Sequence record: MK250021.1
Strand: one strand, 5' to 3'
DNA length: 64,000 nucleotides
Shown here piece after piece: positions 3,579 to 54,000 of this stretch (position 1 is the stretch's first letter; each line of letters opens with the position of its first letter). Position numbers and translations under genes: made by a program. The notes beneath the pieces are model-generated. The model ran no database searches, was not told where the DNA came from, and saw nothing but the letters and a program-made list of their open reading frames with translations.

Positions 3579-4949
3579 TTAAACTATTAATATAGAATCA
3601 CTTATGCATTTATTCTCTGTATTATAATGATCTCTTAATATTAATTTAACTTGTTTTGTATTTACTTCTCTTGGATATACGAAACATTTGAATTCAATAG
3701 GATTTGTTTCATCTATCATGAAATTCTTAAGATTAAGTTTCGCTGGAATTTCTTTTACCTATCCTTTATTATCTTCATATGATATTATACAATCAACTTG
3801 CGAATTTGCCGTAATAAAATATCCTTTATTTAATACATATACAGTCGATTCATCTACTATACGAGTTTCTGGATCCGGATACATATAGATTTCAGGATTT
3901 GTATATACTGTACATTCTTCTGTATTAGGTACGAGAATATCTATACGTGAAGGATTATCTATAAAATCTGTTGGTATTCTCCAATGATAGAAATTATGGT
4001 TATCTACTGAATCCAATACGAACTATTCGCCTTTTTCATCTTCATATAGAATATCAACTTGAAGAAGATCTCTATCTTGATATGAATATTTCCATTCAAC
4101 TAAAAGGTCCTAACCTGATACCAATATCATATCTTCAAAATCTGTTACCCAATGTAATGGCCCTGTTACTTTTTCTGGATGATTTCTATTTACCCATATA
4201 GCATAACCATTATTCCTTATAACATTATCTGCTGGACGTTCATTATATCTATCAAATATAGGTTGATATGTTTCGCACTATATAGTAAATGGAACTTTAA
4301 TCATAGTCTCTGATGGAAGTTGTCCAAAAGTATAAGTTCCTCCTGCCGTTGGTTGATATGCGGATTCTGGAAACCCCACACGAACAGGAACAACAGTTCC
4401 TTTATAATTAATATGATATGTTAAATTCTTATAAAAGAATTCTCTATATGCTTGATTAATTTTCATTGCCTCTGCCATTGTTGAACATCTTATTTCAACA
4501 TTGAAACTATATGTTAACGGCATAGAATAAAGATAAGATACATAAGATTTAAGTTTACCATTTTCTCTTTTTGTATACTTACCCATTACAAACCTGTTAG
4601 TGATATTTCCCGATTCTATTTGAACACTTGACATTGATAAACGTCCCTAAGGGTATCTATCAAAATTACCGTCTATTTTTTGAAGTCCAATATCTGTACA
4701 TTCATCACTTGTGAAATTTGTATAATTATCTTGGATAAACTTTTCTGAATTTTGATTTGAACCACCAAAATCATAAAAGAATGGAACACATACATTTTCT
4801 ATTCCATCTTCTGTATCATCCCATCTTTGCTCGTAATATAATCTTCTGTTAAATACCTTAAGTAATCCTACCAAAACTGCTCTGTCAAAAATATCTGTTG
4901 TATTTCTATTTTCAAAAAGCTATTTAGGAGTTAATTGTGTTTTTGACAT
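3579..4949 (-). CDS. T4 gp15-like tail terminator/sheath stabiliser with C-terminal extension (456 aa)
   Basis: ORFs 4647-4874, 4278-4634 and 3759-4016 join via TAG; ATG 4949, TAA 3579. PLTYSFNVEIRCSTMAEAMKINQ resembles the gp15 core (PIKMIYELSIFTRYEDDMFQIVEQ). Confidence 0.65.
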
Positions 4950-5041: not shown

Positions 5042-6280
5042 TTACTTATCCATTTTTGACCAATATAAATCTTCATCAACTAAATCAATAAGTCCCGACT
5101 AATATACTTTCCAATCGGTTTTTGAATATACATGGTCTTTTACTTTATCATCGTCGTAATCTAATTTATATTGTATTATAATAAAATTACCTTTTTCATC
5201 TTTTCCTTTCTCTATAACTTTATTACTTGTCATATAATTTGATGAATAGTCAGATAAAGACTTTGCATTTAATTTATTATTTTCTTGTAAATGTGAAATT
5301 ACTTTATTTCCAATAATATTTATAATTTCATGCATATCTTTTTTATTACTAAACTTATAATTAGGTATATTATAGTCTATTAAGAATTGTTTAAATAAAT
5401 CCTCACCATATTTAAAACCATTATACTCCGATGGATTCATAATAAGTGGTTGCTGTTCCATTTTGAATAATTTAAATCCTAATTTTTTAAGATATAACAA
5501 AAATAGTTCAAATGTTTTTAAATTTTCACAAATTAAAGAATATCCAAGTATTACATTTTTACATAATTTTGTCAACTTAATAGGGTTTTCATTATTATTT
5601 GTAACAAATATATTAATTTTACTATATAAATTTATATATTCTTCTTTAATAGGAATAACTTTATTTGGATCAATAACTTCTTTCCTAGCATCTCCAATAA
5701 TTATATTTTTTGTTTTATGATATATATCATCTTCTGCGTTCAATATAATATTTTTTATTTTATACCCATTTTCTATATATGTGTTTATAAGATAAAACAT
5801 TTGTAAAAATAATTCATTACCTATATAATCATATGGTATAAACTCCATATTATAATGTGGTTGTCCCATATTAAATATAATATCTGTTATCACTTTATCA
5901 TTAACATGTAATATACAATTTAAATCATATTTGTTTGTTCTACCAAATCCATAAATTTCAATTGTATCAATATCAATTGAATTATCATAGTCTTTAAATT
6001 TACAATTAATCTGAAATTTTTTTACATTATTAAAATATCTTATATAATACTTATTTTTACATGCTTCATTAATATATATTAATCCTATATTGTAAAGATT
6101 TTCAGCCCTATCAAAATTCACAAAACTATCAGGATATTCAGTGATATTATATGGTAGCTTTTTAAGCTATCTTATTTCATTATTATATAATTCCTATGAT
6201 ACTGTACGTTCTGGTGTATCTACAATATCGTCTATATCATCAAAAAGGGACTCAACTAATTTCTTTATTAATTTATTCAT
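5042..6280 (-). CDS. Hypothetical protein with ESLFDD leader (412 aa)
   Basis: MNKLIKKLVESLFDDIDD; TAG readthrough on both sides of ORF 5099-6121; TAA 5042; start overlaps the upstream stop (ATGA). Confidence 0.8.
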
Positions 6281-9200
6281 TTTGTATATTTTTGTTCTAT
6301 TATTTTTATAATAAATTTAATATTATCATAAGCAGGATCCGTATTTACAATAACTTCTCGTGTTCTATTTTCTTGAGTAGGCCAACTATAAGATGAATTA
6401 TATGTTTGCTTTATATTAAATTTAAAAGTTAATCTGTCAAAACTACAATTTATACCATTCTTATTGCTTTCTGTAACACTAAAACTATTAAAATACTACC
6501 AATATACACCTACTGAATTATTTCCATTAAATGAAGAACACAAATAACTACTAAAATCATATGTACTTGTATCATTACTTCTTTCACTATATGATATATT
6601 AATTGTTTTTAATGTAATCGTATCATCATACTATTTATAACCTTCTATATAAAAACATGCACTATTTTTATCTGCATATGTTCTATTAAATACTGTTAAC
6701 CCATTATCAGTACTTTTTTTATAACCATATAAATTTCTAGAATCTAATTGTCCACTTCCTGTTTTTACATTATATGTAAGTCTTGCTAACCATGTATATG
6801 AACTTTTTATATTTGCTTCCTATACAGTTAAATTATATGTTTTTGTCTATTCTTTATTTACTTCTGTATCAGTTGTATTAAAAATATATTTTTCTGTGCT
6901 TCTATCTAATGTTATTGATGGGTTACTCCCTTTATTCTTAAATGTACGATATGTTACTTTTACACGTCCATTACATAACTGACTCCACATATGACCATAT
7001 AAATCTATGTAAATATATTTACATTTGTTTTCTAATAATGTATTACTAATCTATGCTAAAATTTCTTTCATATTAATAAATATAGATTCCTATGAACCTG
7101 ATCTATTATCTCCAGAAAAACCTAGTATATCTTCATATTCTGTATAATTGTTCGTTTGATGCCAATATTCAGTTGTACTTGGATATAAAGTCTCAGAAAA
7201 TCCCATTGTTGTATTATTTAATATATATGTTTTATTATGAGATGTTATATTCATTTTAATATTTTTATTATTTGTAATATGTGTTATTGTATCCAAATCA
7301 GAACCAGTCAATTTATTTTTTTCTGATGGAATATGTGAACTACCAGCATTATTTAAAAATATATATTCAAATAATAAAAAATCAAATGAAGCTAATCCAA
7401 TAGCAAACGCACTTGCTTGATTAATTAACATTATTTTATTGTCAACTGAACCTATATTATATTTTACCGTAAAATTAACACACCTCTCATAATCATAATC
7501 TGAGTCTTTTGGATTCTAACTAAATTTACATTTTAATTCTAATTTATCATCTTTTAATGATGTTTCTTCTGTTTTAAAATCAGCAAGATACTCATATGTC
7601 ATATCACCATCATTATATTTTTCATATGTAACTTCATAATGTGACTAATTAGTATCAATATATGTACCATTTTTTACTTTTGCATAATACTATAAATAAA
7701 AATAGCCTGAATCAGTAGCTTGCAATGCTAATTCTTCCATATCATCTTCAACTTTTGTTGAACCTCTCATATAATATGCATGAACAAATAATTCAAACTC
7801 TCCTGCACCTTGTGATAATGTTTTATCTGCTTTTGCTTGACTATCATGAAATGTATATGTAAATGTAAACGTTAATGTTCTATCTGTTGATGATATACCA
7901 ATTTCAATATTATATATACATCTTGTTCCTGATATTATAGGTTCAGGTATATTTATACTTGAATCTGAGCATGTAAGTTCACCGTCTGATTTTTCATCAC
8001 CATTAAGTTCACCATAACACTCAAGAGTTATAGTTTCCCCTGCATTGTTTATTTTTCCATCTACTGTACCACTCGTTAAATTTATAACAGCATTAATATT
8101 TGATTTACCCTGATATATTATAAAAGTAGACAAATATTCTTTTGTAATATCACTATACTAATATTTTACTGTTATTTTATATATTTTATCAGAAGTTGTA
8201 CTATCATTTTCAGGAATAGTAACAGTTATTTTATAACACGGTTTATCTTCATCTTCATATTTTTCTTTATCACTTCGTATTACACTTATATCATCACATG
8301 TTATATTATAATGTGTTAAATTGTCATCAAATGATTTATCTGGTCCACCTTTAAAATATAGTGTCTATATAATCTTCTTACCATTTTTTCTATAATCGAC
8401 ATAATCAGAACCGTTAAAATCGGGATTGTCTCTTATAATTACACTATACGTTGTGCCTGACTATTTAAGTGTGTCTGATGCATTTAACGACTCATTAATT
8501 GAAACTGTAGCAACTAAATTACGTTCATTCTCTGTGATATTATCTGTTACTGCATATGGATATGAATATACATTATCATCACTTTTTGTTATTTTTGAAA
8601 AATCAATTGATATATTTTCATCGCCTAATGTTAATTTAAAATCATATTTTATTTTTGATAAATCTAATTTATTCTTTTGTTCTTTATCATCAGCTTTTGT
8701 TAAATAATAATGTATATATATTATATCATTATTCTCATTCTTATTATTAGATATAGATGTTATTATTTTATTTCCATCCTTATTATAAAATCCAATATAT
8801 AATGTATAATTAGTAGTATTATATGCAAATCTTTTAATATATAAATAGTTTGATTTTCCAGTAGTATTTACCGACTTACCATTATTATAATTGTAATATG
8901 TATAATTTCGTTTATACTATAAACTATAAGTAGTATTTTCTGTTTTTGACGTTATATCACTTAACTAAACAGTAAATTCATAATAATTATCAGTATCATT
9001 AAATTCTGGGTTTTTTACAATAGTAATTTCATCATTTGATGATAAATAAATATCATCTTTTTTAATTGTTATATGATTTCCTTTAAGTTCACCGGTTTTT
9101 TTATCAAATGGCTATTTATAATCTAAATCTATATGATCATTACAATATAATCCTAAATATAATGTTAATGTTTGTTCTGTAGGATCACAATATATATAAT

Positions 9201-12200
9201 AATCATTTATCTTTTTATAGATATTACCATCTTTATGTCTAATTCCATATATTTTATTGTTATTCGGCGTCTCATTATCTTCAATACTATCCTTAGGATC
9301 ATCTACTAAATACGATAAATTATATGCTCTTGTTGCTTCCTTTTGACATATCTATATAATCCTAGTAGTAGAAGATTCTTTATAATTGTTCTAATAATGA
9401 ATGCAAAAATAAAAATACTACTAAACATCATTAATATTTTCATTCATTGTTATTTCTTGACCTATATAATTAATATTTCCGACTTTTTCACTTGATTGTT
9501 CTGATATTGTATAATATGGTACATTAGATATTAGTGTATAAATTCCTAATTTATTTTTATAATAAAAATTCTTAAATGTTGTATCTATAAGTCTTTTACT
9601 AATATCCCTGTATTGATAAATAACATTATAATATATAATAAAATTTTTAACTTTTGTTGTATCAATATTATATATTACCACATTTGATGTATTAGGACTA
9701 GTTGACATTATTCCTGCTTCTTTATCATTAATTCTATAATGTGATATATACGCATATTTATTTTTTGATGCAGTATATATCTATGAAGCATCATCATATA
9801 ATGTATATACTTTATCTTTGTATAAAACAAACTATGTATATGCATAATCAATATCTTTATACTTTTGTATATATTTTAATATAATTTTATTATCAAATGC
9901 TAATAAATTCTACGGTATATTTAAACAACCATAATAATAATCTTCATCTTCATTATATATTATATTAGAAGTATATGGCATTAAATTATTTTGTGACCAT
10001 AAAGTTAAATTATTTGTGTTATTAAGATTAATAGTTAAGTCACTATTATAGTTTCTTAAATCAATATTTACTAATTTAATATTTCCATTTTCAATAATTG
10101 ACTCCTACATATAATATTTAAAATATAATACAGTATCATGTAAAATATTTTCAATAATATAACTATCTTTTGTTGAGTTATTATATGTTAACTTATCATC
10201 TAAACTACTATTACTATATAATTCTAAATTTAATTTTATATATGTTTGCTATAATGTTAATGTATCTTCTTCAATATTAGAATTAGTATTATACCTATAT
10301 TTTCCTATAATTATTAATTTTCTTATCCTTTGATTATTATTTACATTTGTGTTATCTATATTTTTTATATCTAATTTTATATTTGTATAATCTGAAGTAT
10401 TAACTAATTTTATTTGTGAATTCAAAATATTATCTGAAGTATTGTCTATCACAGCAGAAGTTAAATATGTTGTATAGTATGCGTTTGAACTTGTTCCTTT
10501 ATTTTTTTCTTCCTAATTATTATATAATATACCATAGCCTTTAACTATAAAATTACTATTACCTTCAAATGATATAATATTCGTATCAGATACAAGCTTA
10601 CATTCATACTATAGTGATTCCTATGTGATTTTAATATAATCGGTTCTATTAATTTCAGTATTTCCTAATATATATGATATTTGATAATAAAATTCTCTAT
10701 TACCATTTACATTATAATATTCATTTTTTAATCGAATATTTTGTGCACTAAGGAAATCATCGGTATCTTTAGTAGTTTCATATTCTATATTTTCTAAATC
10801 AAATAATGAATTAGCAGATATAAATTTATCCTAATTTTTCTAATAGAAATTTATGTCGAATAAATTGCTATCAATCACTATAGATTTTTCATTATCATAA
10901 ACATTAACTGCATTAAAAACCAATTTAATTTCACTAAATTGAGGAATACCACCTATTGTGTCAGTTGATAATTTTTCATTTATATTAACTTTAGTTTGCG
11001 TAGTATCAAAATGTTGTTGTATAAAAGTTATATTATTTAACTTTAATGTCGATAAACTTATATTTATATATATTTCTGGATTTATAAATTTAGTTAATAA
11101 TGGGAACTACAAATATAAATTTTTTTTATCAGTTGAATTTTCATTAATATCTTTAATATTATTATAATCAAAATCAGTTAAATTTTTATTTGTTCTCGTA
11201 TAATTAATCTCATAATATTCTGTTATTTCTGTATTATCAATATATTTAATATTACTCATAGATGTAATTATATGTTGTCCGTCACTCGTTCTTGCATAAT
11301 AATATAATGATATATCTTTACCAAATGGTGTTACTTTAAAAACAGATGGTGAATCATAAAATTCATCATCAATTTCATAACATAGCTTCATATCCGTATC
11401 ATATTTCTATATTATAACAATTTCATTACTTTTAATTTTATTCTTATATATAACATATACTTTTACCTTCCTTTCATATAATGTATAATTAGGATTTATG
11501 ATTAAATTTAAATTATACTGTTTGTCTATATATGATGTTATACCTGTTTGATAATTTAATTCATATGTATTATTAATAAACTCAAAATGAACATCCAAAT
11601 CATCGCTTTGTGTATATTCATTATTTAAACTAAAAGTATATATTAATTTCTTTATTTCACCTTGATATAATATATCATCCGCATTTGTGTTATTGATTGA
11701 GTCAATACCTAATTTTATAACATAATTATTAAATCTTTGTGTAATATAATAATCTCTCTACTTAGAATTATATGTTGTTTTAAATATTACAGAAAATTTT
11801 AAATTTTTGGTAACTGTATTTATATTTTCATCGATTAAATAAATTAAATCTATTTCATTCTATACTGTTGTTCTTAATGATTTAATATTACTTGTATCTA
11901 ATTGTTTGTCATTAATTAATAATGTAACATTAGACTAATTTATATCATTAAGAATTCCATAATATTTAATATGAAGTTCTTGTTCATTACCAGATATTTT
12001 ACCTCCAATTATATGTTCTGTTACTTTACCATTTTTATCAATCCAATTTTCTTTATTATTTAATTCATCAGTTTTTTGCTATTCAGTAGGAATAAATTCT
12101 AAACGTACATCAACATCTTCATAAGGAGCTTGTGAAACTTTTGCATATATATGATTAATACCAGAAATAAAAGATGAATCTGCTGGTATATTATTACTAA

Positions 12201-12477
12201 CAGCAAATTCCATTATACCTTTACGTAATTTCTTTTCTGTATTATCATTAATAGATGTAATAGTTAATTTATTATAATACTTATTTTCTGTTGTAAATTT
12301 ATATCCAGTAATCCAATCAGGTTTATATATACATTCAATAGTAGATGTAATAGGTATATAGTTTTTTTCCAATACTGCATAATATTCCGTATCAGTACTG
12401 GTAAACTTATTTGCTGGTAATATAGGTAATGTAATTGTGTCTGATAATAATTTATTAAATTTATAATCGTTCATCAT
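6277..12477 (-). CDS. Giant 2066-aa beta-rich protein with BACON/Ig-like repeats; putative tail fibre/virion adhesin
   Basis: One frame from ATG 12477 to TGA 6277, interrupted only by about 35 TAG; links seven listed ORF fragments; segments such as WITGY...LTITSINDNTEKKLRKGIMEFAV...KVSQA fit the BACON pattern. Confidence 0.75.
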
Positions 12478-27471: not shown

Positions 27472-28011
27472 TTATTTCTTAAAAATATCTATATCATTAT
27501 CAATTCCAGTTTCCATAACAGCTTTTGATTTACTTGATGAAACAACCGTATATTCAATATCCGATGTATTACTGATAAACCATCTACCAGGATAACGTGC
27601 ACACAAATCTTTATGTTCTCTTACAATATCAAGCATTCGTTCCTGACTCTTCTGAAACTCACTTCTCAATACTTCAACACTTTCCATAATATTCTTATAG
27701 AGAGATGAATCAAATTGAGGATTTGCCTCGGTAATCCACTTCATAAGTGAGCCATCATTTGCATCATAACGTTCACTCATAATATGTGTATAAATACTAT
27801 CAAAACTCTCTGCATACTTATCACTAATTTGTGCTTGTTGAGAAATAGTTTTCCACATACGATCATGCATGCCTTCAATCTTACCTCTCTGTGCTTCAGC
27901 TTCATTTCTCAATGAAATCTCCTGATTATTATAAGAGAAATACATTGATACTCCAGAAATTACAAAAATTCCAATAATAACTGAAACAATAATAATTGCA
28001 ATCTTTTTCAT
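27472..28011 (-). CDS. LemA-like membrane-anchored protein
   Basis: N-terminal TM then YNNQEISLRNEAEAQ helical region. Confidence 0.55.
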   Translation of the reverse strand: MKKIAIIIVSVIIGIFVISGVSMYFSYNNQEISLRNEAEAQRGKIEGMHDRMWKTISQQAQISDKYAESFDSIYTHIMSERYDANDGSLMKWITEANPQFDSSLYKNIMESVEVLRSEFQKSQERMLDIVREHKDLCARYPGRWFISNTSDIEYTVVSSSKSKAVMETGIDNDIDIFKK

Positions 28012-28044
28012 TTTTCTAAATTATTTATTAAGTTAAATTTATTA

Positions 28045-28188
28045 TTAATTACCATAAACTAATGTATGAATATCTTCATATGTAAAACCATTTGTTGATA
28101 TATTATTTAATGATGGTTTTACTTTTCTAAAATCTATTTTATCCATACATATAGTAGAATAATTTATGCCATTATAACTTCTATTCAT
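28045..28188 (-). CDS. Small hypothetical protein (47 aa)
   Basis: ATG 28188 directly after the upstream stop, TAA 28045. Confidence 0.45.
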   Translation of the reverse strand: MNRSYNGINYSTICMDKIDFRKVKPSLNNISTNGFTYEDIHTLVYGN

Positions 28189-28189
28189 T

Positions 28190-28453
28190 TTACATCACTT
28201 TTCTATAAAATACATTTCCTTCTTCTTCAAATCCTTCAATAGAAGAAATATCATAATCAGTATATTCTTTTCCATCAGAAAAATCTGTTAACTTTCCATT
28301 TTCTGATTTAATAAACCCAGATACTGTCTCATCACCACATGGATGAATTTCAAATACACCATTAATTTCTTTAATATCAGAAATACTTCTAACTTTATCG
28401 CCTAAAAATATTTTATTATTCTTGCGTGATATATTAACATTATTAAATTCCAT
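28190..28453 (-). CDS. Hypothetical protein
   Basis: 87-aa ORF in an early-promoter operon. Confidence 0.65.
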   Translation of the reverse strand: MEFNNVNISRKNNKIFLGDKVRSISDIKEINGVFEIHPCGDETVSGFIKSENGKLTDFSDGKEYTDYDISSIEGFEEEGNVFYRKVM

Positions 28454-28464
28454 ATTACTTCTAA

Positions 28465-28833
28465 TTAAAGTTTCTCAACAATTACAGTAGGATTAATAAC
28501 AAAATCATACAAATCTGTCTTAATCTCAGTATTATTAACTTCAGTAATAGTTAATATATTATAATCATAATATACTTTATCACCAACTTTAAGTGTTGAC
28601 GCAAGAACTTTTTCAGATTCACCATAATTAAAAGTATCTCGCTCAAATTGATTCATTCCATCTGTAGGAATAGGACAAATTGCATCAAAATTATCAATCA
28701 ACCATTCTTTTGATACATTACCTGAGACAATCTGAGGTCCACCAAGCTTAGAAAGTCCAAGATATGCCTTTACTTTAGACATCTTATCTGCATACTCAGA
28801 AACACTATACCATTTAATATTATTGTTATTCAT
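28465..28833 (-). CDS. Hypothetical protein
   Basis: 122-aa ORF directly downstream of the TATCTTTG promoter. Confidence 0.7.
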   Translation of the reverse strand: MNNNNIKWYSVSEYADKMSKVKAYLGLSKLGGPQIVSGNVSKEWLIDNFDAICPIPTDGMNQFERDTFNYGESEKVLASTLKVGDKVYYDYNILTITEVNNTEIKTDLYDFVINPTVIVEKL

Positions 28834-28880
28834 AATTGTATATCTTTTTAATTGTTCAACTTATTTGTTTATTAACAATA

Positions 28881-28888
28881 CAAAGATA
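28881..28888 (-). promoter_or_regulatory. Bacteroidetes sigma70-type -7 element (TAnnTTTG)
   Basis: Reverse strand reads gtgTATCTTTGtattgttaataaac, same context as five other copies. Confidence 0.75.
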
Positions 28889-28912
28889 CACAATTATTTC
28901 CAAAATAAAAAA

Positions 28913-30169
28913 TTATTCATAAGAATTTTCATAATCTTTTAATTTTTCTTTCGCATATTCTATAGTTATATGAAATTCTTTTTCATTAGACGCCGGTAAA
29001 TTATACATTGCATCATCCATAAGATTCTCTACTATTCCTCTTAACCCCCTAGCGCCTAATTTATTCTTAATAGATAACTTAACTATATAATCATAAACTT
29101 CATCATCTATTATAAGTTCAATACCATCTAATTTAAACAACTTCTTAAATTGTTTAATAATAGCATTTTTCGGTTCTGTAAGAATTCTCTTCAAATCATC
29201 TTCAGTTAAAGGATTAAGATATGTAATAATAGGAAGTCTACCTATTAATTCTGGAATCAAACCATAATTCTTTAAATCTTCCGCATTTACATATTTAAAT
29301 ATGTTTTCTTTATTATCAGAAAAATCTTTCTTATCCTTTGATACAAATCCTAATGTAGATTTATTAAGTCGTCTCTCTATAATTTTATTCAAACCAACAA
29401 AAGCACCACCACAAATAAATAAAATATTTTTTGTATCAACCTCTACCATTTTAGCATCCGGGTGTTTTCTTCCTCCCTTTGGTGGAACATTTACAACAGA
29501 ACCTTCAATTATTTTAAGTAATGCTTGTTGAACGCCTTCACCTGAAACATCTCTTGTTATAGATGGATTTCCTCCGGATTTCCTTGCAATCTTATCAATC
29601 TCATCAAGAAATACTATTCCGTGTTCTGCTTTCTTAACATCATAATCACATGCTTGGAGAAGTCTTGTGATTGCAGTCTCAACATCATCACCAACGTATC
29701 CAGCTTCAGTGATAGAATTAGAATCCACTATACTAATTGGTACATCTAACATTTTAGCAATAGACTTAACCAAAAGTGTTTTACCAGTACCAGTGTCTCC
29801 CAAAAGTATACAGTTACTCTTCTCAATCTCTACATCATCAAATCCTTTTTGCTTAATTCTCTTATAATGATTATAAACTGCAACTGCTAACCTTTGTTTC
29901 GCTTTATCCTGACCAATTACATATTGATCCAAAAATTCTTTAATCTCTGTAGGTTTTTTTACATCATCCTTATGGAAATTATCATCTGGTGATAAAAACT
30001 GTGTATTATGATTTACTATACTCAAATTCATATTGTAAATCTGGTCACAACATTCATTACAAATACTTCCATATTCACCATTAAAAAGTAATGCAACTTG
30101 GTCTTTCGTCTTACCACAAAATGAACACTTATTTTCTTTTTTATTTGTATCTTTCTTTTTTTCTGCCAT
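28913..30169 (-). CDS. clpX: ATP-dependent Clp protease ATP-binding subunit ClpX
   Basis: CSFCGK zinc-binding domain, [56 protein letters not shown]. Confidence 0.97.
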
Positions 30170-30272: not shown

Positions 30273-30470
30273 ATGAAAACTATTAAAAAGTCTTCAGTTA
30301 AAAATAAAAATATAAAAGGTAAAATAGGATAGGATGGTGGTTATTATGTTGATAATTGTCCAGTCTTAATCCCTAAGGAAAATATTAAGTTTTTCACTGC
30401 TATGCAAAAAGCATGTTCAATAAATCCATATGGAAAATATGGTAATGCATGTAATGTTAAATTATTGTGA
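30273..30470 (+). CDS. Small hypothetical protein (65 aa, one TAG)
   Basis: ATG 30273 to TGA 30468. Confidence 0.45.
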
Positions 30471-30620
30471 TAATAACTAATAAAACATAAAACTCGAAAT
30501 TTGATACAATATCTCTCCTGCATCGCGTCAAAATCTCTTTACCTTATAGTTATTAGTCTTAATTAAAAATAATGTGATACAGAGAGAATTTTATTAAATA
30601 ATAATTTTCATAAAATAAAA

Positions 30621-30660
30621 AAGAGATTAATAAGTTTTGTTTATTGCTTATTAATCTCTT
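30621..30660 (-). terminator. Intrinsic terminator after the displaced uvsY 3' end
   Basis: aagagattaataag/cttattaatctctt stem with a T-run on the minus strand. Confidence 0.75.
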
Positions 30661-30685
30661 TACTTTTCTATTTAATATAATTTCA

Positions 30686-30739
30686 TTAAAACTTCAAACC
30701 ATGTATCATTTCAAAAACCTTAATCTTATTATTTATGCC
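30686..30739 (-). repeat. 54-nt direct repeat copy 2 (out-of-gene GINNKIKVFEMIHGLKF-stop); putative TnpB guide/original gene end
   Basis: 49/54 identical to 32031-32084; all 5 differences are at synonymous third codon positions. Confidence 0.95.
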
Positions 30740-30900
30740 AATATTTGTGTTTATATACTAATATATAAACAATTATTTCTTGTTTCATAGACACTCTACT
30801 TTTTAGTATAATCATTAGTAATGATTTAGTCATCCATAGTTGGTATCTCCGCAAGCGTAAATTCGGGTAAATATACACCTATTATATTTTAATAATTTAT
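30720..30900 (-). ncRNA. Putative TnpB omegaRNA (scaffold plus about 20-nt guide)
   Basis: Directly downstream of the tnpB stop; contains ATAGGT..CCCGAATTTACGCTTG..ACTATGGATGAC..GAAACAAGAA and a perfect hairpin gtttatata-ttag-tatataaac just before repeat copy 2. Boundaries inferred. Confidence 0.65.
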
Positions 30901-32022
30901 TTGTTTTAATCCTTCTGCTAAAATATTTAATGAAGCATTATAATCTCTATCAATCTCTTTACCACAATGTGGACATATCCATTCTCTCTAACTTAATTTT
31001 AAATCTTTATAAATATGTCTACAATTATGGCAAGTTTTAGATGAAGGATAGAATCTATTTATTATAACCAGCTATTTTCCATACCATCTACATTTATATT
31101 CTAACTATTTTCTAAATTCAAATAAAGATAACTCTTGAATAGATTTAGCAAGTTTATGATTAGACATCATTCCATTTACATTTAAATCTTCAATACAGAT
31201 AACTTGATTTTCATTAACTAGTTTTGAAGTGATTTGATGTAAATATGTATTTCTCTAATTTTTTATTTTCTCATGAACTTTTGCAATTTTAATTCTAACT
31301 TTATTCCGATTATTACTTCCTTTCTATTTCTTACTTAACAACCTCTATAATTTCTTTAATTTCTTTTCTTGATTTCTATAGAAATGTTTATTTTCATATC
31401 TATTTCCATTAGAATCAACGATAAAATCTTTTATTCCTAAATCTAAACCTATTACGGTATCTAATTTTTCTTTTTGTATAATATTATAATCTATTAAAAT
31501 AAACAAATAATATTTTTCTGTAGAAGTTTTAATAAGCGTAATTGAATGTATTTTATTTTGATTATGATTTAAATATATTTCATCTTTTTTAGAACATTTA
31601 AATAATATATTCTTTAACTATTTAATTAATGTTATCCTATTACCATTAATTTTCTTCTTTTTAAATTTAAATATAGTTCTTGTAAATCTACAACTTTGCT
31701 TAATATCTTTCTTTGATTTGAATTTAGGATAACCATTATGTAATTTAAAGAAATTATCATATGCTTTAATTAAATCCTACATTGATTGCTATAAACACAT
31801 AGCATATACATCATTTAAAAAAGTATATTCATCTTGTTTTTTTAAATTAGTCAAATATTTACCTAATTGTGTCCATGATACAACTTGTTTATTCTACTCA
31901 TACTATGACTTCTTATAATCCAATAATTTATTATATATAAGTCTACAACAACCTAACTGTTTAGAAATAAATTCTTTCTAAACATTATCAGGATATATTC
32001 GTATTTTAATATATTTTAACAT
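30889..32022 (-). CDS. tnpB: TnpB RNA-guided endonuclease (IS200/IS605 family), 377 aa, 12 TAG codons, RuvC triad intact
   Basis: [69 protein letters not shown]; TAA 30889. Missing from the ORF track because of the TAGs. Confidence 0.95.
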
Positions 32023-32030
32023 AATATTTT

Positions 32031-32084
32031 TTAAAATTTTAAACCATGTATCATTTCAAAAACTTTAATCTTATTGTTTATACC
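32031..32084 (-). repeat. 54-nt direct repeat copy 1 (in-frame recoded uvsY 3' end)
   Basis: ggt ata aac aat aag att aaa ... tta aaa ttt taa versus ggc ata aat aat aag att aag ... ttg aag ttt taa. Confidence 0.95.
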
Positions 32085-32561
32085 GTAAATAATATTATCA
32101 ATAGTTGAGATGGTATCTTTCATATACTTACAGAAATTATCCAATAAATCAACTGATTCTTTTTCTGCTGATAGTTGAGATTCAATCTGTAAATTAATAG
32201 CACTTTCATTCGTATATCTAATTCCAGATGAACCAGATTTTAAAGCTAAATAAATTCCTGATGCTTTAGACTTATAATCTCTCGTTTGCTTTTGTAATAT
32301 CTTTGCTGTTCCATAAAATAAGTCTATTGCTTCTTGCCTCTTTAAATAAACTTCATTCATCAAACCATCAATAGATTTCAAATCTTTCATTCGTTCATTT
32401 AAATTCTTAATAATATCTGTCCACTTATCTTGAAGATTACTCAATGAATTTTCCAATGAATTTTGTTGTGAATTAATATTATTATTCTGATTAGTTTGTT
32501 GAACTTGATTATTATCTATAGAATTATTATTTTCTGTTACTACTTCATTTTCTTTATCCAT
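32031..32561 (-). CDS. UvsY-like recombination mediator protein
   Basis: All-helical, UvsY-like size; C-terminus LLDNFCKYMKDTISTIDNIIYGINNKIKVFE resembles T4 UvsY LLDFCSGALDAIKSRGFAIKHIQDM. Confidence 0.6.
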   Translation of the reverse strand: MDKENEVVTENNNSIDNNQVQQTNQNNNINSQQNSLENSLSNLQDKWTDIIKNLNERMKDLKSIDGLMNEVYLKRQEAIDLFYGTAKILQKQTRDYKSKASGIYLALKSGSSGIRYTNESAINLQIESQLSAEKESVDLLDNFCKYMKDTISTIDNIIYGINNKIKVFEMIHGLKF

Positions 32562-32697: not shown

Positions 32698-33204
32698 NNN
32701 NNNNNNNNNNNNNNNNNNNNNNNNNNNNNNNNNNNNNNNNNNNNNNNNNNNNNNNNNNNNNNNNNNNNNNNNNNNNNNNNNNNNNNNNNNNNNNNNNNNN
32801 NNNNNNNNNNNNNNNNNNNNNNNNNNNNNNNNNNNNNNNNNNNNNNNNNNNNNNNNNNNNNNNNNNNNNNNNNNNNNNNNNNNNNNNNNNNNNNNNNNNN
32901 NNNNNNNNNNNNNNNNNNNNNNNNNNNNNNNNNNNNNNNNNNNNNNNNNNNNNNNNNNNNNNNNNNNNNNNNNNNNNNNNNNNNNNNNNNNNNNNNNNNN
33001 NNNNNNNNNNNNNNNNNNNNNNNNNNNNNNNNNNNNNNNNNNNNNNNNNNNNNNNNNNNNNNNNNNNNNNNNNNNNNNNNNNNNNNNNNNNNNNNNNNNN
33101 NNNNNNNNNNNNNNNNNNNNNNNNNNNNNNNNNNNNNNNNNNNNNNNNNNNNNNNNNNNNNNNNNNNNNNNNNNNNNNNNNNNNNNNNNNNNNNNNNNNN
33201 NNNN
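32698..33204. other. Assembly gap (run of N)
   Basis: 507 n characters. Confidence 1.
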
Positions 33205-37793: not shown

Positions 37794-39470
37794 ATGAAGA
37801 TAGAAAAAATTGAATTTCGTAATTTATTTTCTTATGGTGAGTAGGTATAGGAAATTAATTATGATGATACAGGTAAGTTAATCCTATTGAAGGGACAAAG
37901 TGGCGCAGGAAAGTCTGCCATTCTTTCATTACCATGTTTATTGTTATATGGAAAGTTGGAGAAGGTTCCAAAGACTTCTATAGCAAATCGTATTAATAAG
38001 AATGGTTGGATGCGAGGAACAATTAAACAAGGTTAGCATACTTATGTGATAGAAAGAAAATTTTCACCCAATGGTGTAACTGTTTTTAAAGATAATGAGA
38101 ATATAGAGAATTACGGTACAAAAGATGCATAGTCATTTATTGATTCTGAAATTATCGATATTCCACAAGCAACTTATTCAAATATGATTTCTATATCTAT
38201 GAAGTCGTTTAAGTCATTCCTTAAAATGTCACCAGCAGATCGAAAACAAATCATTGATAGAGTTTTTGATTTGGAAATTATTAATGTTGTTTTTGAGAAT
38301 CTTAAGAAAGATATGAGAGATTTAGGTTCATCTATTAACGCTGATAATTCTACCATATTTTCTTTAAATTAGACTATTCAAAACGCTAATAATGAGTTAA
38401 TTCAAATTCAGTAGAAAGTATAGTCAAAAGAAAATCAAGATAAGATATAGGAAAATAATTTAATGATAGAAGAAAATAATAAGAAATTAAAAACATTAAA
38501 TGATGGATATAACCAATATGTTTAGAAACAATAGGAAATATCAAATCAATTTAATGTTATTAAGAATAAGCAAATTGAAAATTCTGTTAATATAAGATAG
38601 ATTCAAGAGAAGATAAATCTATTTAAATAGGAAAAGTGTCCAACATGTGGATGTTCATTTTCATCTGAATAGTTTAATGAATTAAGAGAAAACCTTAATA
38701 AGTTAATGCAAGATAAAATGAATATTGATACTACATTACAAGGATAGATGAAGACACTTACTGATAATAGTAAAGTTGTTACAGATTATCTTAATAAAAT
38801 TACGTCTGCTGTATCAAAAATTAATTAGAGTATAAATACACTTAATTCCGAAAATCTTGTGATACAAGAGAAATTAAAGTCTAATTCTGAATATAAAGCT
38901 GTATAGAATATTATAAAGAAAACAACAGATCAACTTAATGTAATTAAGAAAAGTATTGAAGATAAAAATCAATAGATGTTGGATTTACAGAATTTATCAT
39001 TAGTTTATTCTATAGATGGTGTAAAACAAAAGGTAATTAATAATTATCTGCCTTTATTAAATAAAGAGATAGAAGATAATCTTATATTATTAAATGTTCC
39101 TTATGGATTAGAATTTGATAGTAAGTTTGATCCTCATCTTAAAGATTTAGGAAATGAATTAGATCCAGTTACATTAAGTGACGGTGAGATGACACGTGTA
39201 GATATTGTTGTATTATGTAGTTTGTTTAAGTTACTTAAGCGCAGATACCCATCTATTAATACATTTACGTTAGATGAAGTAATATCTACATTGGATAACT
39301 CAAATTCTGGAGCTGTATTGGAATTCCTTAAGAATTTTGCAAAAGACAATAAGTTGAATTGCTTTGTTGTTTCACACACTGATTTATACCTTGAGAATTT
39401 TGATGAGATAATAGAGGTTGAGAAACATAATGGGTTTTCTAGATTTTCTGTTATGTTAACTTCACAATAA
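37794..39470 (+). CDS. gp46/SbcC/Rad50-like ATPase subunit (558 aa, 17 TAG)
   Basis: FRNLFSYG, GQSGAGKS, CPTCG zinc hook, LSDGE signature, TLDEVISTLD, VVSH. Confidence 0.92.
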
Positions 39471-46589: not shown

Positions 46590-48026
46590 ATGATAATTAA
46601 ATCACTATATGAATCATTGGTAAATTGTTTGAATGAAGCACGTGTTTAGAGAACTATAGATAAGAAACTTTGGTTAAGTATAGCATCTACATGTTCACGA
46701 AATAAATCAACTGAAGCTGAAAATATTAAACCACGACCAACATAGACGAAAGAATAGTTGTTACCGAGATATGTAGCTGCTCTTCTTATAATGAAGAAGC
46801 AATGTCCAGAAAATGAATAGGATATTGATGATATAAAGACATTTAAATTAGTCGGTAAACGTTTACTATAGTTAGGTTGCACAATAGATGAAATAAAGCA
46901 AGAGTATATTAATAACGGAGGTAAATTAGTTACTAATACAATTAATGTAAATTCTTAGAAAACTACATAGGTTAATCAAAAACTTAATCAAGAAATAAAG
47001 AAAGAAGATTAGGTTAAAGTTGATAAAACAAAAGAAGTAAAGAATGAGAAACCAAAGGTATAGAAACCATTACCGCCAGGTATTAAATCTTATGATGAAG
47101 TATATGATTTTGTAAAACGTTCATATAATGATTTATATGAAATCTGCAGTGAAATATATGATATTCTTGATATGACATATTTTACATTAAAGAAATCTTT
47201 TTATAAGATAGAAACTCCTAAATATAAATTGTATTTCAGAGATGTTACAACAGATGAGAATCAGAAACTTTATTACAATGATAAACATTGTGTTTATATA
47301 ACATGGATAAAAATTGTTAAAACTAAAGTAGTTGAAGGTACATTTTGTATATTAACTAATAATATGACAATTAATGATGACCCTATTGGTAATACTATAT
47401 AGTTAGATGATAATACAGTAATTACTAAACAATAGTTATATGAAATATGTTTAACTATATTAGCAAAATTAAGATATGCTACATAGAGTAATTATAATAA
47501 TCCATTATTACCTAAAATAAAAGAGAAAACAACTTCATTCGGTATATTTGGAAATAAATCACGTGATTTTAATTCTATAATAGATAAAGGTGAAATTGAA
47601 AAGATATTACCATTTGTAATTAAGAAATATAATACTATGAAAAAATGTAATGATATTCTTGAATTATTTTTATATAAAGCAAGGATGGGTAATAGAAATA
47701 GTGGTAAAGTATTAGAATTAGATGAACCTATATATACAGGTAAATTCTTTAATTCATAGGAAACTTTTGATTTGATTGGATATGGCTTTAAACCAGCCGC
47801 ATAGTTTATTATTCAATTTAAGTATGATGATAAATATACGACACAAATAATATATGGATATGAAGCTAGAGAATATGGACCTCCAGCAAATATTGCATCG
47901 TATTATACATCTAACAAAGATTTTTCAGCATATAGGGTAGATATGAAAGAATTACAAAAAGCTTTATGGTATACTATAGCTGTTTTATTATATTATAAAA
48001 ATAATTATAGTAATGTAATTAAATAA
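46590..48026 (+). CDS. LYES..LNEA leader protein (478 aa), heavily TAG-recoded
   Basis: MIIKSLYESLVNCLNEARVQR; open to TAA 48024. Confidence 0.75.
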
Positions 48027-50826: not shown

Positions 50827-51012
50827 ATTCTTTCATACTATAATAATTGATGAGTTTAATGCTAACCTATTTTTATAGGTTAGCATTTTTTATTTTATAC
50901 TGTTTTACTATCTTATAAATATAAAAATATGTTTATAGTTATTATTCTAAATTTATTCAGTTAAGAATAATAGATAAATAATAAAAAGAAAATTTATTTA
51001 ATAAAACATAAT

Positions 51013-54000
51013 ATGGGAAAAATTTCTATTGACTTATCTACTATAAAATCAGCTGGTATTTATACTATAGAAATCGATAACTCACAGAGAGAAGTAACTA
51101 ATCCTACTTCACTTCGTTTGTTACCTGGTTTTAATAACAAAGGTCCATTCAACCGTCCTGTATTCATGCAATATGAATCTGAACGTCAGAAGATCTTTGG
51201 TGATATTGACAGTAAGCTTGAGTAGAAAGGTTGTTTCTTTAATAGAATGGCATAGACTATGCTTAAGGATGGTCCTGTATTGGCACTTAATTTATTAAAG
51301 GTTGATGAATCAATTGATGGGCCTGATTAGGTAAACTATGCGGCTATGTCATTAGACTCATGCAAGGCCAACCCTAAGGTTGTAAATGCCGGTACAACAT
51401 ATGGTGAGTATGATTATTAGACAACAGAAAAAAATGATGGTATTGATAATATTTTATATGGTATTAAGCGTGGTGATGTAATACCATATGTAGGGAAAAC
51501 ACCATATGCAAGTTTATTTGATCGCGCGAGATTCTGGATTCCATCTAAGAATAATCTTCAAGCAGTTGCGGCAAATGGTTTGTCATCTAATGATCAAGGT
51601 TCATATGAGCATACAAACTTACTTAATTTCGCTAATACCGGAACAGATGAGATTTCTATTCTTGTTTATAAGCCGGAAAATATTACAGGTTATGATGTAA
51701 CAGCGAAAGAGTGGTATGGTGGCGATGAGAATATTCCTTATGGTTGGATTCGTCCATCAGATTATATTTCTGACTATTTCATTCGTGTCGTTGCTATAAA
51801 AGGAAACTGGACAAATTATCCTATTTTGTCAAATGATCCAATATGGGGAAAATACTTTGATAAAAATGGTGTAATTAAAAATAAGGTATCTACATTATGC
51901 TCAGCAGAAGGTGTTACATTTATTGGTTCTTGGACCGGTACAATTATTCCAGATTTTACAGATAAACAGGGTAATTACATGTATATTGAATCTAAAGTAA
52001 ATGCTAATACAGAACAAACAGGTCTTTTAATGTCTGTTAATGAAGATGCTCTTCAAGTCATTTCATATGATAAGAATGGTATTGATAATCCAACTGGTAA
52101 TAAAAACGGTAGAGGTACATGGATATTTGATTTTGATGAGAATAAACAAGGTGAATCTGAGTTAGGTGAAGACGCAATTCAAGATAGTGGTTATCTTATT
52201 GATATGGTAGGTCATAATATTCAATATGGCTTTCAGAAAAATGATTACTATTTGAATCTTGCACACCCTTTGAGTAATAGTACATTAGAAAAATATCCTA
52301 CATATTATTTCTTAAAAACAAAAGGCAGTAATAATATTAGTACTGATGATAATACAGTTAGTAATGCGGTATTCCCATTAATGTTTAATGGTAGAAATAC
52401 GGAAGATACATCAGATGATATAAAAAAAGAAGCAACAGTTAGAGTTTTATATACTAATGAAACTCAAAAAACTAATACTCCTGATTTTTATAAGGCTTAT
52501 ATTGTATGTGATAAAAAATCAAAGAATAATGATGTTGCAGATACATTAACAGGTGATAGAAATATTTACGTAATATTACCAGTATCTGATAAAAATGCGT
52601 TGAAAAAAAGTACTGACGAAATTAAGACACTTAAAGCATATTCATAGAAGGATAAGAATGTATCTTATAATATTAGTACTGATGAGATAACTAATAAAAC
52701 AATTGCTCAAGTTATAAAAACAACAGTAACAGAATTATCACTTAAGGAAGTTCCTGTAAAAGCAGATACAAACGATAATTATGTTTATCAAAATAAATCA
52801 ATGTATTATGGTACATATGGTTTAGCTGATTATACAAAAGCATCAATTTAGATTTTCTCTATTATTGGTGGTACTACATCTGAAAGCTATGCAGTTATAA
52901 GAGATAATGGTATTATATCAACTAAAACATTAAATAATACATTGATAAAAACTAATGTTGCAACAAAAACTAAAATATCTGATACGGCAACTTCAGAAAA
53001 AGATGTATACACATTTAGTTATGCGGGAAATGATTATGCATTTGATGCGTAGAATATCTTATATAAGAATGTAAGTTCTGAAACCTCTGCATATACAGGT
53101 GTTAACTTTATGTCTTATAATTATCTTACAAATGATCCAGGAGAGATAATAACAAATGTATATAGTGCATATTATTTCAATGGATATATAAATAAGTCTG
53201 ATAATTCAGCGGTAGTTAGCTTGTCAGATGAAAAATTGCTGTATGATGTAGATAATACACCGGTATCAAAAGATAATTTGAATATGTTTATTATAACAAA
53301 TGATATAGAAGCTACAAATATATCTGTTGGTGATTATGTAAATAATATATCATTTAACAATAATATAGGTGAAGCAGAAACATATAATTTGATTCCAGGT
53401 ATTACAAGAATTATTACTAAGGTATTTGTCAATGTAGATGCGTGTGAAGAGTTTACTTATAAAGGTAAGAAATATCATATTAATGTTGCTAATTTAAGTA
53501 ATGGACAGTTAATTGAAACCAAAGCCGGTAAGAGAGGATTTTATTTGTTTACTGCATTGGATCCTGTATATATTTCTAATACAAATTATGTTAAACGTCA
53601 AAAACCTTTAACATCAGATATTATTTCTCATACATTGAAGTTCATTCCTCTTAAAGGCTTACATATTTCTGCAAAACATCGTCCAGGATATGATGCTAAT
53701 GGTAAACCTGATATTGAAGGAGGTATTGAGAAGATTTATTCAATGCTCGAGGACGACGGAATTCACAGAGGACTTTGTAATCCTAATATGGTTGATTATC
53801 GTTATATCGTTGATTCAATGTCATATGGTTTATCAAATGAAATGGGTGGTAAGAAATACCTTGCAATTCTTGCGAAGGATCGTATGAAGACAACAGCTTT
53901 GCTTAATCTTCCATCTAAGAGACAGTTTGAACTTTCTACAGATCCATGTTTCTGCGATACTTATGATTAGGGTGTTTATACAAAACCTTCATTCGATACT

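Follow-up and report, generated by a model that had tools for sequence, protein, structure and literature searches.

The stretch of DNA analysed here, 64,000 nucleotides (nt) of sequence record MK250021.1 and hereafter called the window, contains many long open reading frames (ORFs) that are broken under the standard code and become open when TAG is read as glutamine. Together with the closest records to the window, which are viral contigs of 250-550 kb, these ORFs indicate that we are dealing with a part of a TAG-recoded, Lak-like megaphage, and its source can be assigned to a giant gut phage of that kind. Between positions 30686 and 32561, a gene for a TnpB nuclease sits next to the 3' end of a conserved phage gene (the host gene), and the end of this gene is present twice, once in frame ahead of tnpB and once, untranslated, after the right end of the cassette. 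The features of the locus, all of them on the minus strand and listed in the order in which that strand is read, are the following, with the evidence that defines them in brackets:

32031..32561, minus strand, host gene for a conserved coiled-coil protein of 176 amino acids (aa), UvsY-like by fold only (ORF and AlphaFold model)
32085..32087, minus strand, TAC (Tyr) codon directly before T1 (occupied versus empty alleles)
32031..32084, minus strand, T1, the copy of the gene end that is in frame and completes the gene (final 17 codons with stop), located toward the left end of the cassette (repeat comparison)
32023..32030, minus strand, 8-nt spacer from the host TAA to the tnpB ATG, in place of a left end of ~210 nt (alignment of 11 paralogous sites)
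30889..32022, minus strand, tnpB, 377 aa with 12 in-frame TAG codons read as Gln, its ATG at 32022 (open only with TAG as Gln)
30740..30888, minus strand, right end and predicted omegaRNA scaffold (core, hairpin and linker conserved in paralogues)
30776-30786, minus strand, end of the conserved core, GAAACAAGAAA (paralogue alignment)
30748-30771, minus strand, 10-bp right-end hairpin (paralogue alignment)
30740-30747, minus strand, 8-nt right-end linker CAAATATT (directly before the GGC of T2 at 30739)
30686..30739, minus strand, T2, the copy of the gene end that is not translated and that runs on into the ancestral downstream flank (homology to empty alleles)
30610..30671, minus strand, AT-rich hairpin and T-run that originally served the host gene as terminator (inverted repeat I3 with arms of 25 nt and 84% complementarity)

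T1 (32084..32031) and T2 (30739..30686) form a direct repeat with 49 identical positions out of 54, the differences falling at repeat positions 3, 9, 21, 45 and 48. The translation of either copy is GINNKIKVFEMIHGLKF*, and the five differences are consequently, without exception, synonymous third positions, an outcome with P = 1.4e-4 under random placement and 2.2e-3 when only transitions are allowed. The sequence upstream of T1 reads ATT ATT TAC, and the one upstream of T2 ends in ...CAAATATT. Because T1 lies in frame before the cassette, the gene is kept whole, while the sole ORF across T2 uses a different frame. Homology to the alleles of related phages that lack the cassette runs on from T2 into the terminator and the ClpX side, and the terminator hairpin that follows T2 has its homologous position in those empty alleles. 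This hairpin was not called by a G+C-based terminator scan, and scans for sigma-70 promoters and G+C-rich terminators are uninformative in this AT-rich phage. The original prediction for this DNA had already described the 54-nt repeat with its five synonymous differences, a downstream copy followed by the terminator, and a host gene that stays full length without splicing. These three descriptions stand after reanalysis, given the repeat statistics above, the AT-rich hairpin and T-run at 30610-30671, and a continuous ORF in a region (30400-32100, E<=10) where Rfam returned no intron family and no omegaRNA family, the only weak match being the hairpin at the terminator.

The host-gene protein has no match in Pfam or PHROG. 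Its homologues, with 42-65% identity over the whole protein, share a C-terminus of the form ...IIYGIN.KI..E.I.GLKF. An AlphaFold model of the 176-aa protein (predicted local distance difference test, pLDDT, of 79) finds its best fold matches in the PDB with UvsY of phage T4 (4zwt/4zwr; probability ~1, template-modelling scores of 0.62-0.67 or 0.5/0.65, weak E 0.1), and the fold matches in BFVD include UvsY of cyanophage S-CAM3, also at a weak E (1e-2). For the label 'UvsY-like' of the original prediction there are thus fold matches of weak E and no family match, and the label is reasonable but unproven.

The predicted product of tnpB matches the Pfam families HTH_OrfB_IS605, OrfB_IS605 and the Cas12f1-like TNB zinc ribbon (E 1e-25, 3e-25 and 1e-16) as well as phrog_506 (E 4e-123), and aligns end to end with the TnpB of ISDra2 (8bf8, E 4e-61) with the RuvC D/E/D residues and both CxxC pairs in place. 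Searches in IMG/VR revealed paralogues in six genomes of related phages, TAG-recoded megaphages of 0.3-0.55 Mb, which together hold 11 distinct sites and individually as many as four or five. Every one of these tnpB genes is intact, and the catalytic motifs are invariant in the 11 paralogues, which upholds the intact RuvC D-E-D triad read initially from the window copy alone. The ratio of nonsynonymous to synonymous substitution rates (dN/dS) of the paralogues against the tnpB of the window ranges from 0.08 to 0.21, and the predicted nuclease is, by these comparisons, intact and under purifying selection. At aligned codons of the paralogues TAG alternates with CAA/CAG, indicating that this tnpB family has long been resident in recoded phages. 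No match to the Y1 transposase TnpA (PF01797) was found in five related records (G001-G005), including a 553-kb genome scored as 100% complete, whereas the controls were positive, and this excludes mobility by a TnpA from within the phage. The nearest bacterial relatives of this TnpB are Firmicutes copies, only 42-50% identical, and a derivation of the target-adjacent motif (TAM) from them was dropped as the relatives are too distant. A single match of 67% identity lies in a 2082-nt contig binned as Clostridium sp. (L174, JALFMW010000168.1), which is probably a phage fragment.

The alignment of the 11 sites allowed us to define the ends of the element. Nine of them have in common a structured left end that occupies ~210 nt ahead of the ATG. 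It is absent from the window copy and from L022, and in the window the homology to the other sites reaches no further than a few nt (about 15 at most) upstream of the tnpB ATG. The absence of a left end and of a tnpA gene, as claimed in the original prediction, is substantiated by this alignment and by the PF01797 search. On the other side of the gene, all copies carry a nearly invariant core of ~110 nt ending in GAAACAAGAAA, within a conserved block of ~140 nt that stays nearly invariant though the paralogous ORFs are ~83% identical, and whose consensus fold shows 5 compensatory pairs. In most copies the core is followed by a covarying hairpin with differing stems (10 bp in the window, 12 bp in L020, 9 bp in L030) and by a linker of 8-9 nt ending in ..TAT(T). 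Hairpin and linker are common to L030 and L031 though their sites differ, a clean pair of occupied and empty sites (L031/G003) places the junction 8 nt past the hairpin, and the same 8 nt are found in the window, all of which indicates that T2 starts at the right-end boundary. In characterised TnpB elements the guide is the flank that follows the right end, ~16 nt from the boundary (PMC8612924). T2 begins exactly at the corresponding predicted guide position, as had been proposed for the downstream copy, and the predicted guide would comprise its first 16-20 nt (30720-30739); we infer the expression of the omegaRNA and its ends. Altogether, the cassette is classified as an IS1341-type TnpB/omegaRNA element, devoid of transposase and left end, that lies 17 codons before the host stop and after a ...TAT| motif.

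Two other placements of the right-end boundary were considered. A guide starting directly after GAAACAAGAAA, which would leave the repeat 36 nt away, was dropped in view of the hairpin and linker architecture and of the empty site of L031. The 25-36 nt after the core could instead have been a common promoter or gene-start motif, that is, part of the target, but the motif is not enriched in the window and is shared by L030 and L031 at different sites, and these nucleotides consequently belong to the right end as its hairpin and linker. As for the opposite side, the canonical left end occurs at L017, L019, L020, L021, L024, L027, L030, L031 and L034 (locus position ~2290-2500), where long-range stems covary between copies (GACGGGTTG/CAACCCGTC, GGCCGGTTAA/TTAACCGGCC, GGGAGAGTT/AACTCTCC and ATCGTTTATATT/AATATAAACGAT), and it looks like a structured DNA or RNA element.

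The uvsY-like locus is represented in related genomes by seven occupied and nine empty alleles, and tnpB-free single-copy alleles are present in two relatives, of 553 kb and 416 kb, as well as in several contigs of lesser length. The natural empty allele reads TTTAT+GGAATTAAT..., and all nine empties have the form ...TAT|GGAAT(T/C)AAT..., whereas the seven occupied alleles read TAC|GGTAT.... Since TAT is present in every empty allele, the TAC of the occupied form is a derived synonymous T-to-C change at the last position of the motif, a sixth silent change located precisely where the TAM would be read. In clean pairs of occupied and empty sites, the left junction is TTTAT| in L021, AATAT| in L017, ATAAT| in L027 and A(A/G)TAT| in L031, and the empties show TTTAT| or ATAT| at the junction of the uvsY-like locus and GG(G/A)AT| at L020. 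The proposal that TTAC is the target motif does not survive this comparison, with TAT|GG in nine of nine empties and clean-pair junctions in ...TAT or ...AAT. Contigs from three metagenome runs (X1-X3) join 30731 to 32077 and skip exactly 1345 nt, so an empty allele must exist in a relative about 90-94% identical; for this closest allele the runs give the joint only, and look-ups returned a more distant type. T1 and T2 share ATA and ATACAT against all empties, which indicates that the duplication of the window arose within this lineage. Compared with the predicted guide, T1 has mismatches at two positions (3 and 9), both within the 12-nt TAM-proximal zone, in agreement with the seed mismatches claimed for the in-frame copy. 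In the TnpB of ISDra2, adjacent double mismatches within positions 1-12 abolish cleavage (PMC10097598).

A comparable arrangement was found at a second locus, L020, in another phage contig and in another gene, which ends in ...MKERMDTNASVKLF*. Here the left end is intact, and a segment of about 50 nt from the gene end (the final ~14 codons and the stop), together with 9 nt past the stop, is found again directly after the right-end linker. The four differences between the copies are again all synonymous third positions (P 1.3e-3), and with an 8-nt linker the translated copy would mismatch the guide at positions 3 and 6. The site is empty in G002 and G004, and the two copies share two lineage-specific changes, from which it follows that the duplication arose in that lineage. 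When the four differences are polarised against both empties, the translated copy carries the derived state at three of them and the untranslated copy at one. This polarity is opposite to the neutral expectation, under which a neutral remnant should change several times faster than the synonymous sites of a live gene. L020 is a second case, independent of the window locus and in an unrelated gene, and it provides what the original prediction had proposed to look for, a tnpB flanked by synonymous-only direct repeats. Considering the whole clade, target duplications of 18-54 nt flank the element at five of the 11 sites:

Window, 54-nt duplication
L020, duplication of about 50 nt
L022, 46-nt duplication, in a copy without left end
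L021, duplication of about 52 nt that rebuilds the promoter and the first nine codons of the downstream gene
L017, duplication of about 20 nt

Among more distant viral TnpB loci, flanking repeats of at least 22 nt were detected in only 2 of 62, one of them corresponding to a neighbouring tRNA gene pair and the other to a terminator.

The reading that we favour, tentatively and with somewhat less than even confidence, is that the cassette is an RNA-guided 'home-and-rescue' or intronless-homing element. The omegaRNA would carry T2 as its guide, and TnpB would cut those alleles of co-infecting relatives in which the target motif precedes a T2-like sequence. The break would then be repaired from the occupied genome, with T1, the cassette and T2 copied across. 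The occupied genome would be protected in three ways: T1 departs from the guide at two positions (3 and 9), the TAT in front of it is now TAC, and T2 is preceded by the right end and not by a target motif. We infer in this scheme the TAM itself, the cleavage of the empty but not of the occupied allele, and homing. In plasmids, TnpB has been demonstrated to drive spread into replicons that lack the element (PMC11870625), and spread between co-infecting phages has been proposed (PMC13565253). A broader version, which we consider possible but doubtful, would be that the TnpB cassettes found without TnpA in TAG-recoded megaphages make up a class of natural 'home-and-rescue' drives guided by RNA. 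In such a class, the sensitive version of a gene end would be stored as the guide template next to a resistant synonymous copy, cutting of unoccupied alleles would serve spread or the exclusion of rivals, and target duplication would be a regular part of the life cycle. TnpB is known for protecting its own transposon once this has been excised.

Several observations weigh against homing. The TAM is only loosely defined as ...(A/T)AT, with GGGAT/GGAAT in the empties of L020, the right ends themselves finish in ...TAT, and the discrimination between self and non-self is not accounted for. The empty alleles that the original prediction called for do exist, but none of those sampled carries the guide version; all of them mismatch the predicted guide at positions 3 and 6, and their mismatches (two) are as numerous as in the supposedly immune T1. 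A degenerate-pattern scan of IMG/VR for a window-type empty allele gave no hit, and among the six loci recovered in a metagenome scan none was both window-type and empty. Moreover, polarity is mixed in the window (position 9 is derived in T1, position 48 in T2, and positions 3, 21 and 45 are ambiguous), differences 45 and 48 lie beyond any guide, and the differences of both loci taken together are not significantly concentrated in the seed, with four of nine in the first 12 nt. At L021 the guide-side copy is the diverged one and differs non-synonymously, and at L027 an insertion nine codons before the stop is tolerated without rescue. Finally, the cassette differs from the nearest record by 1 single-nucleotide polymorphism (SNP) in 30500-32100 (1.6 kb) against 1-2% in the flanks, but such a low density between strains is not unusual for this genome; a recent sweep of the cassette was put aside as an explanation, since equally clean SNP-free tracts of 1.5-3 kb are common across the 64 kb and offer no evidence for it.

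Part of this list is what one would expect from a passive scar of gene rescue, the main rival, a history that we regard as rather unlikely though worth serious attention. An IS1341-type element would have landed in the 3' end of the gene, and rare illegitimate or homologous recombination with the allele of a co-infecting strain would have rebuilt the gene and deleted the left end, leaving T2 as a young unselected remnant and TnpB without any role in upkeep or spread; a single unequal crossover, or a Campbell-type integration of a piece carrying the gene end, could have sufficed. If T1 and T2 are simply two natural alleles, their synonymous-only differences are explained, and strain mosaics with patches of 10-20% divergence make an allele 9% different available. 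The two differences outside any guide, the mixed polarity of the window, the messy rearrangements at L022 and L021, the plain intragenic insertion at L027 and the lack of a guide-matching empty allele among those sampled all fit such a scar. Against it stands that the same outcome arose independently at L020, with copies that share lineage-specific changes and three of four changes in the translated copy, and that the untranslated T2 shows no indel or non-synonymous-type change at either locus. The strong constraint on TnpB and scaffold and the coincidence to the base of the start of T2 with the right-end boundary also speak against it, and the TAT-to-TAC change at the motif position is left unexplained by it. 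With the same anatomy, the cassette could also be kept as a weapon of exclusion, its RNA-guided nuclease cutting the UvsY-like gene of competitors in co-infection (localized marker exclusion or killing) with no need for the cassette to be copied, which we judge improbable. Free-standing phage endonucleases do both things (PMC13565253), every sampled genome of this lineage is occupied, and the 12 TAG codons mean that TnpB would be made only once the suppressor system of the phage is active. Against a pure weapon, the alleles of known competitors mismatch the guide at positions 3 and 6, and the homology of the flanks means that repair would copy the cassette anyway, which makes it hard to separate from homing. 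As for an assembly or chimera artefact, a concern that the original prediction had raised, mis-joins can indeed yield direct repeats around a gene that resembles an insertion sequence. The arrangement of T1, cassette and T2 is, however, identical in seven assemblies from different samples and pipelines (the nearest virus record, three from IMG/VR and two from ENA among them), and run X5 has contigs that match the occupied form over part of its length with 95-100% identity, so that the repeat is not of such origin and we give this possibility practically no weight.

The home-and-rescue reading can be placed among known systems. The cassette resembles the IS200/IS605 elements of the IS1341 type (tnpB only; ISDra2; PMC8612924, PMC10097598) in the helix-turn-helix, RuvC D-E-D triad and zinc finger of TnpB, and, as in the ISDra2 type, in the conserved RNA-coding right end of ~140 nt with its subterminal hairpin, in the flank at the guide position and in the insertion after a short 5' motif. 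In contrast to IS200/IS605 elements, the window phage has no TnpA (not required for the IS1341 type) and the left end is deleted, a 54-nt target duplication flanks the element where IS200/IS605 transposition makes none, and the insertion lies inside a coding sequence rebuilt at the DNA level, with tnpB itself written in a TAG=Gln code. With the Seg and Mob homing endonucleases of T-even phages (PMC13565253) it shares a nuclease gene located between conserved phage genes and a target in the neighbouring gene of phages without the nuclease, and the cassette would also spread by repair during co-infection. The Seg/Mob systems are known for intronless homing and localized marker exclusion, and in them the donor is protected by nearby polymorphisms (PMC13565253); specificity in the window would instead be RNA-guided, with the 'sensitive' sequence stored beside the nuclease gene as a guide template, and the protecting polymorphisms would lie in the duplicated gene end. 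IStrons, which combine a group I intron with an IS605/IS607 TnpB (PMC10690162), also place a TnpB element inside a gene whose function is preserved. They restore the gene by RNA splicing, whereas in the window it is a second 3' end, copied at the DNA level, that makes the gene whole, with no intron match in Rfam.

HomeR and cleave-and-rescue drives (PMC7968924) join an RNA-guided nuclease aimed at the end of an essential or conserved gene to a recoded, resistant replacement end. Those are synthetic Cas9 constructs in diploid insects, unlike a natural phage TnpB cassette with a guide from a retained target copy, and the analogy is one of design only. In the plasmid gene drive of an IS605 TnpB (PMC11870625), the nuclease cuts unoccupied co-resident replicons and biases inheritance to the occupied copies, but that element is a canonical IS located between genes and equipped with TnpA, without gene rescue or duplicated target. 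The cassette of the window also recalls the integrases that target gene ends, in that an element lies between two slightly different gene 3' ends and the gene remains intact. Some integrases enter tRNA or protein genes at their 3' end and bring along a substitute for the end that they displace. The window cassette, however, lacks an integrase or att-type recombinase, and the duplication starts exactly at the IS right-end boundary.

We found no description in the literature of TnpB in Lak-type megaphages or of gene-restoring target duplications, and a natural combination of RNA-guided nuclease, stored target copy and synonymous rescue copy would be new. If the homing interpretation is true, it would add a third route for TnpB elements inside genes, beside splicing (IStrons) and intergenic insertion, and would represent the first RNA-guided counterpart of T4-type intronless homing and a precedent in nature for the engineered home-and-rescue drives. 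The multiplication of tnpB in giant phages without a transposase would be explained as well.

Regarding the rest of the window, the reading of TAG as Gln opens, for example, an ORF of 2066 aa with 35 TAG codons at 6277-12477, and further ones at 37794-39470 and 46590-48026; such TAG-using ORFs are probably late genes or structural ones. TAG is absent from the UvsY-like gene, the ClpX-like gene (28913-30169) and others, while tnpB, with its 12 TAG codons, belongs to the TAG-using set. Most of the 64 kb is ~99% identical to the nearest record, with patches at 28001-29000 and 51001-53800 showing 10-20% differences, which points to mosaic exchange between strains. The segment between the terminator and the ClpX-like gene (30496-30596) matches another place of the nearest record at 76% (G001:133374-133474). 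A run of N, either masked sequence or an assembly gap, lies at 32698-33204, just upstream of the UvsY-like gene, and the analysis is independent of it.

Other repeats were noticed around the paralogous sites. In L022, from the window's own lineage, the 46-nt repeat that flanks the cassette (2430-2475 and 3775-3820) is a segment of intergenic or terminator sequence, and ~130 nt further downstream a unit made of the last 8 nt of the right end and the 18 nt with which the next gene begins (AAAACTAT|GAAGAAG...) is also present twice, which points to local rearrangement on more than one occasion. Near one TnpB site (L017:1658-1749), dispersed repeats of ~90 nt have at least 12 copies in G002/G003 with 86-96% identity, and near a second site (L020:1502-1753) others of ~250 nt have copies in G001, G002 and G004 with 75-91% identity; both may be miniature mobile elements or regulatory repeats. 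A more distant TnpB (46% identity) was found inside the tRNA array of a 222-kb viral contig (L133; 1190-1438 and 2780-2912), where a fragment resembling the 3' half of a tRNA (GGTTCGATTCC...) stands directly after the right end.

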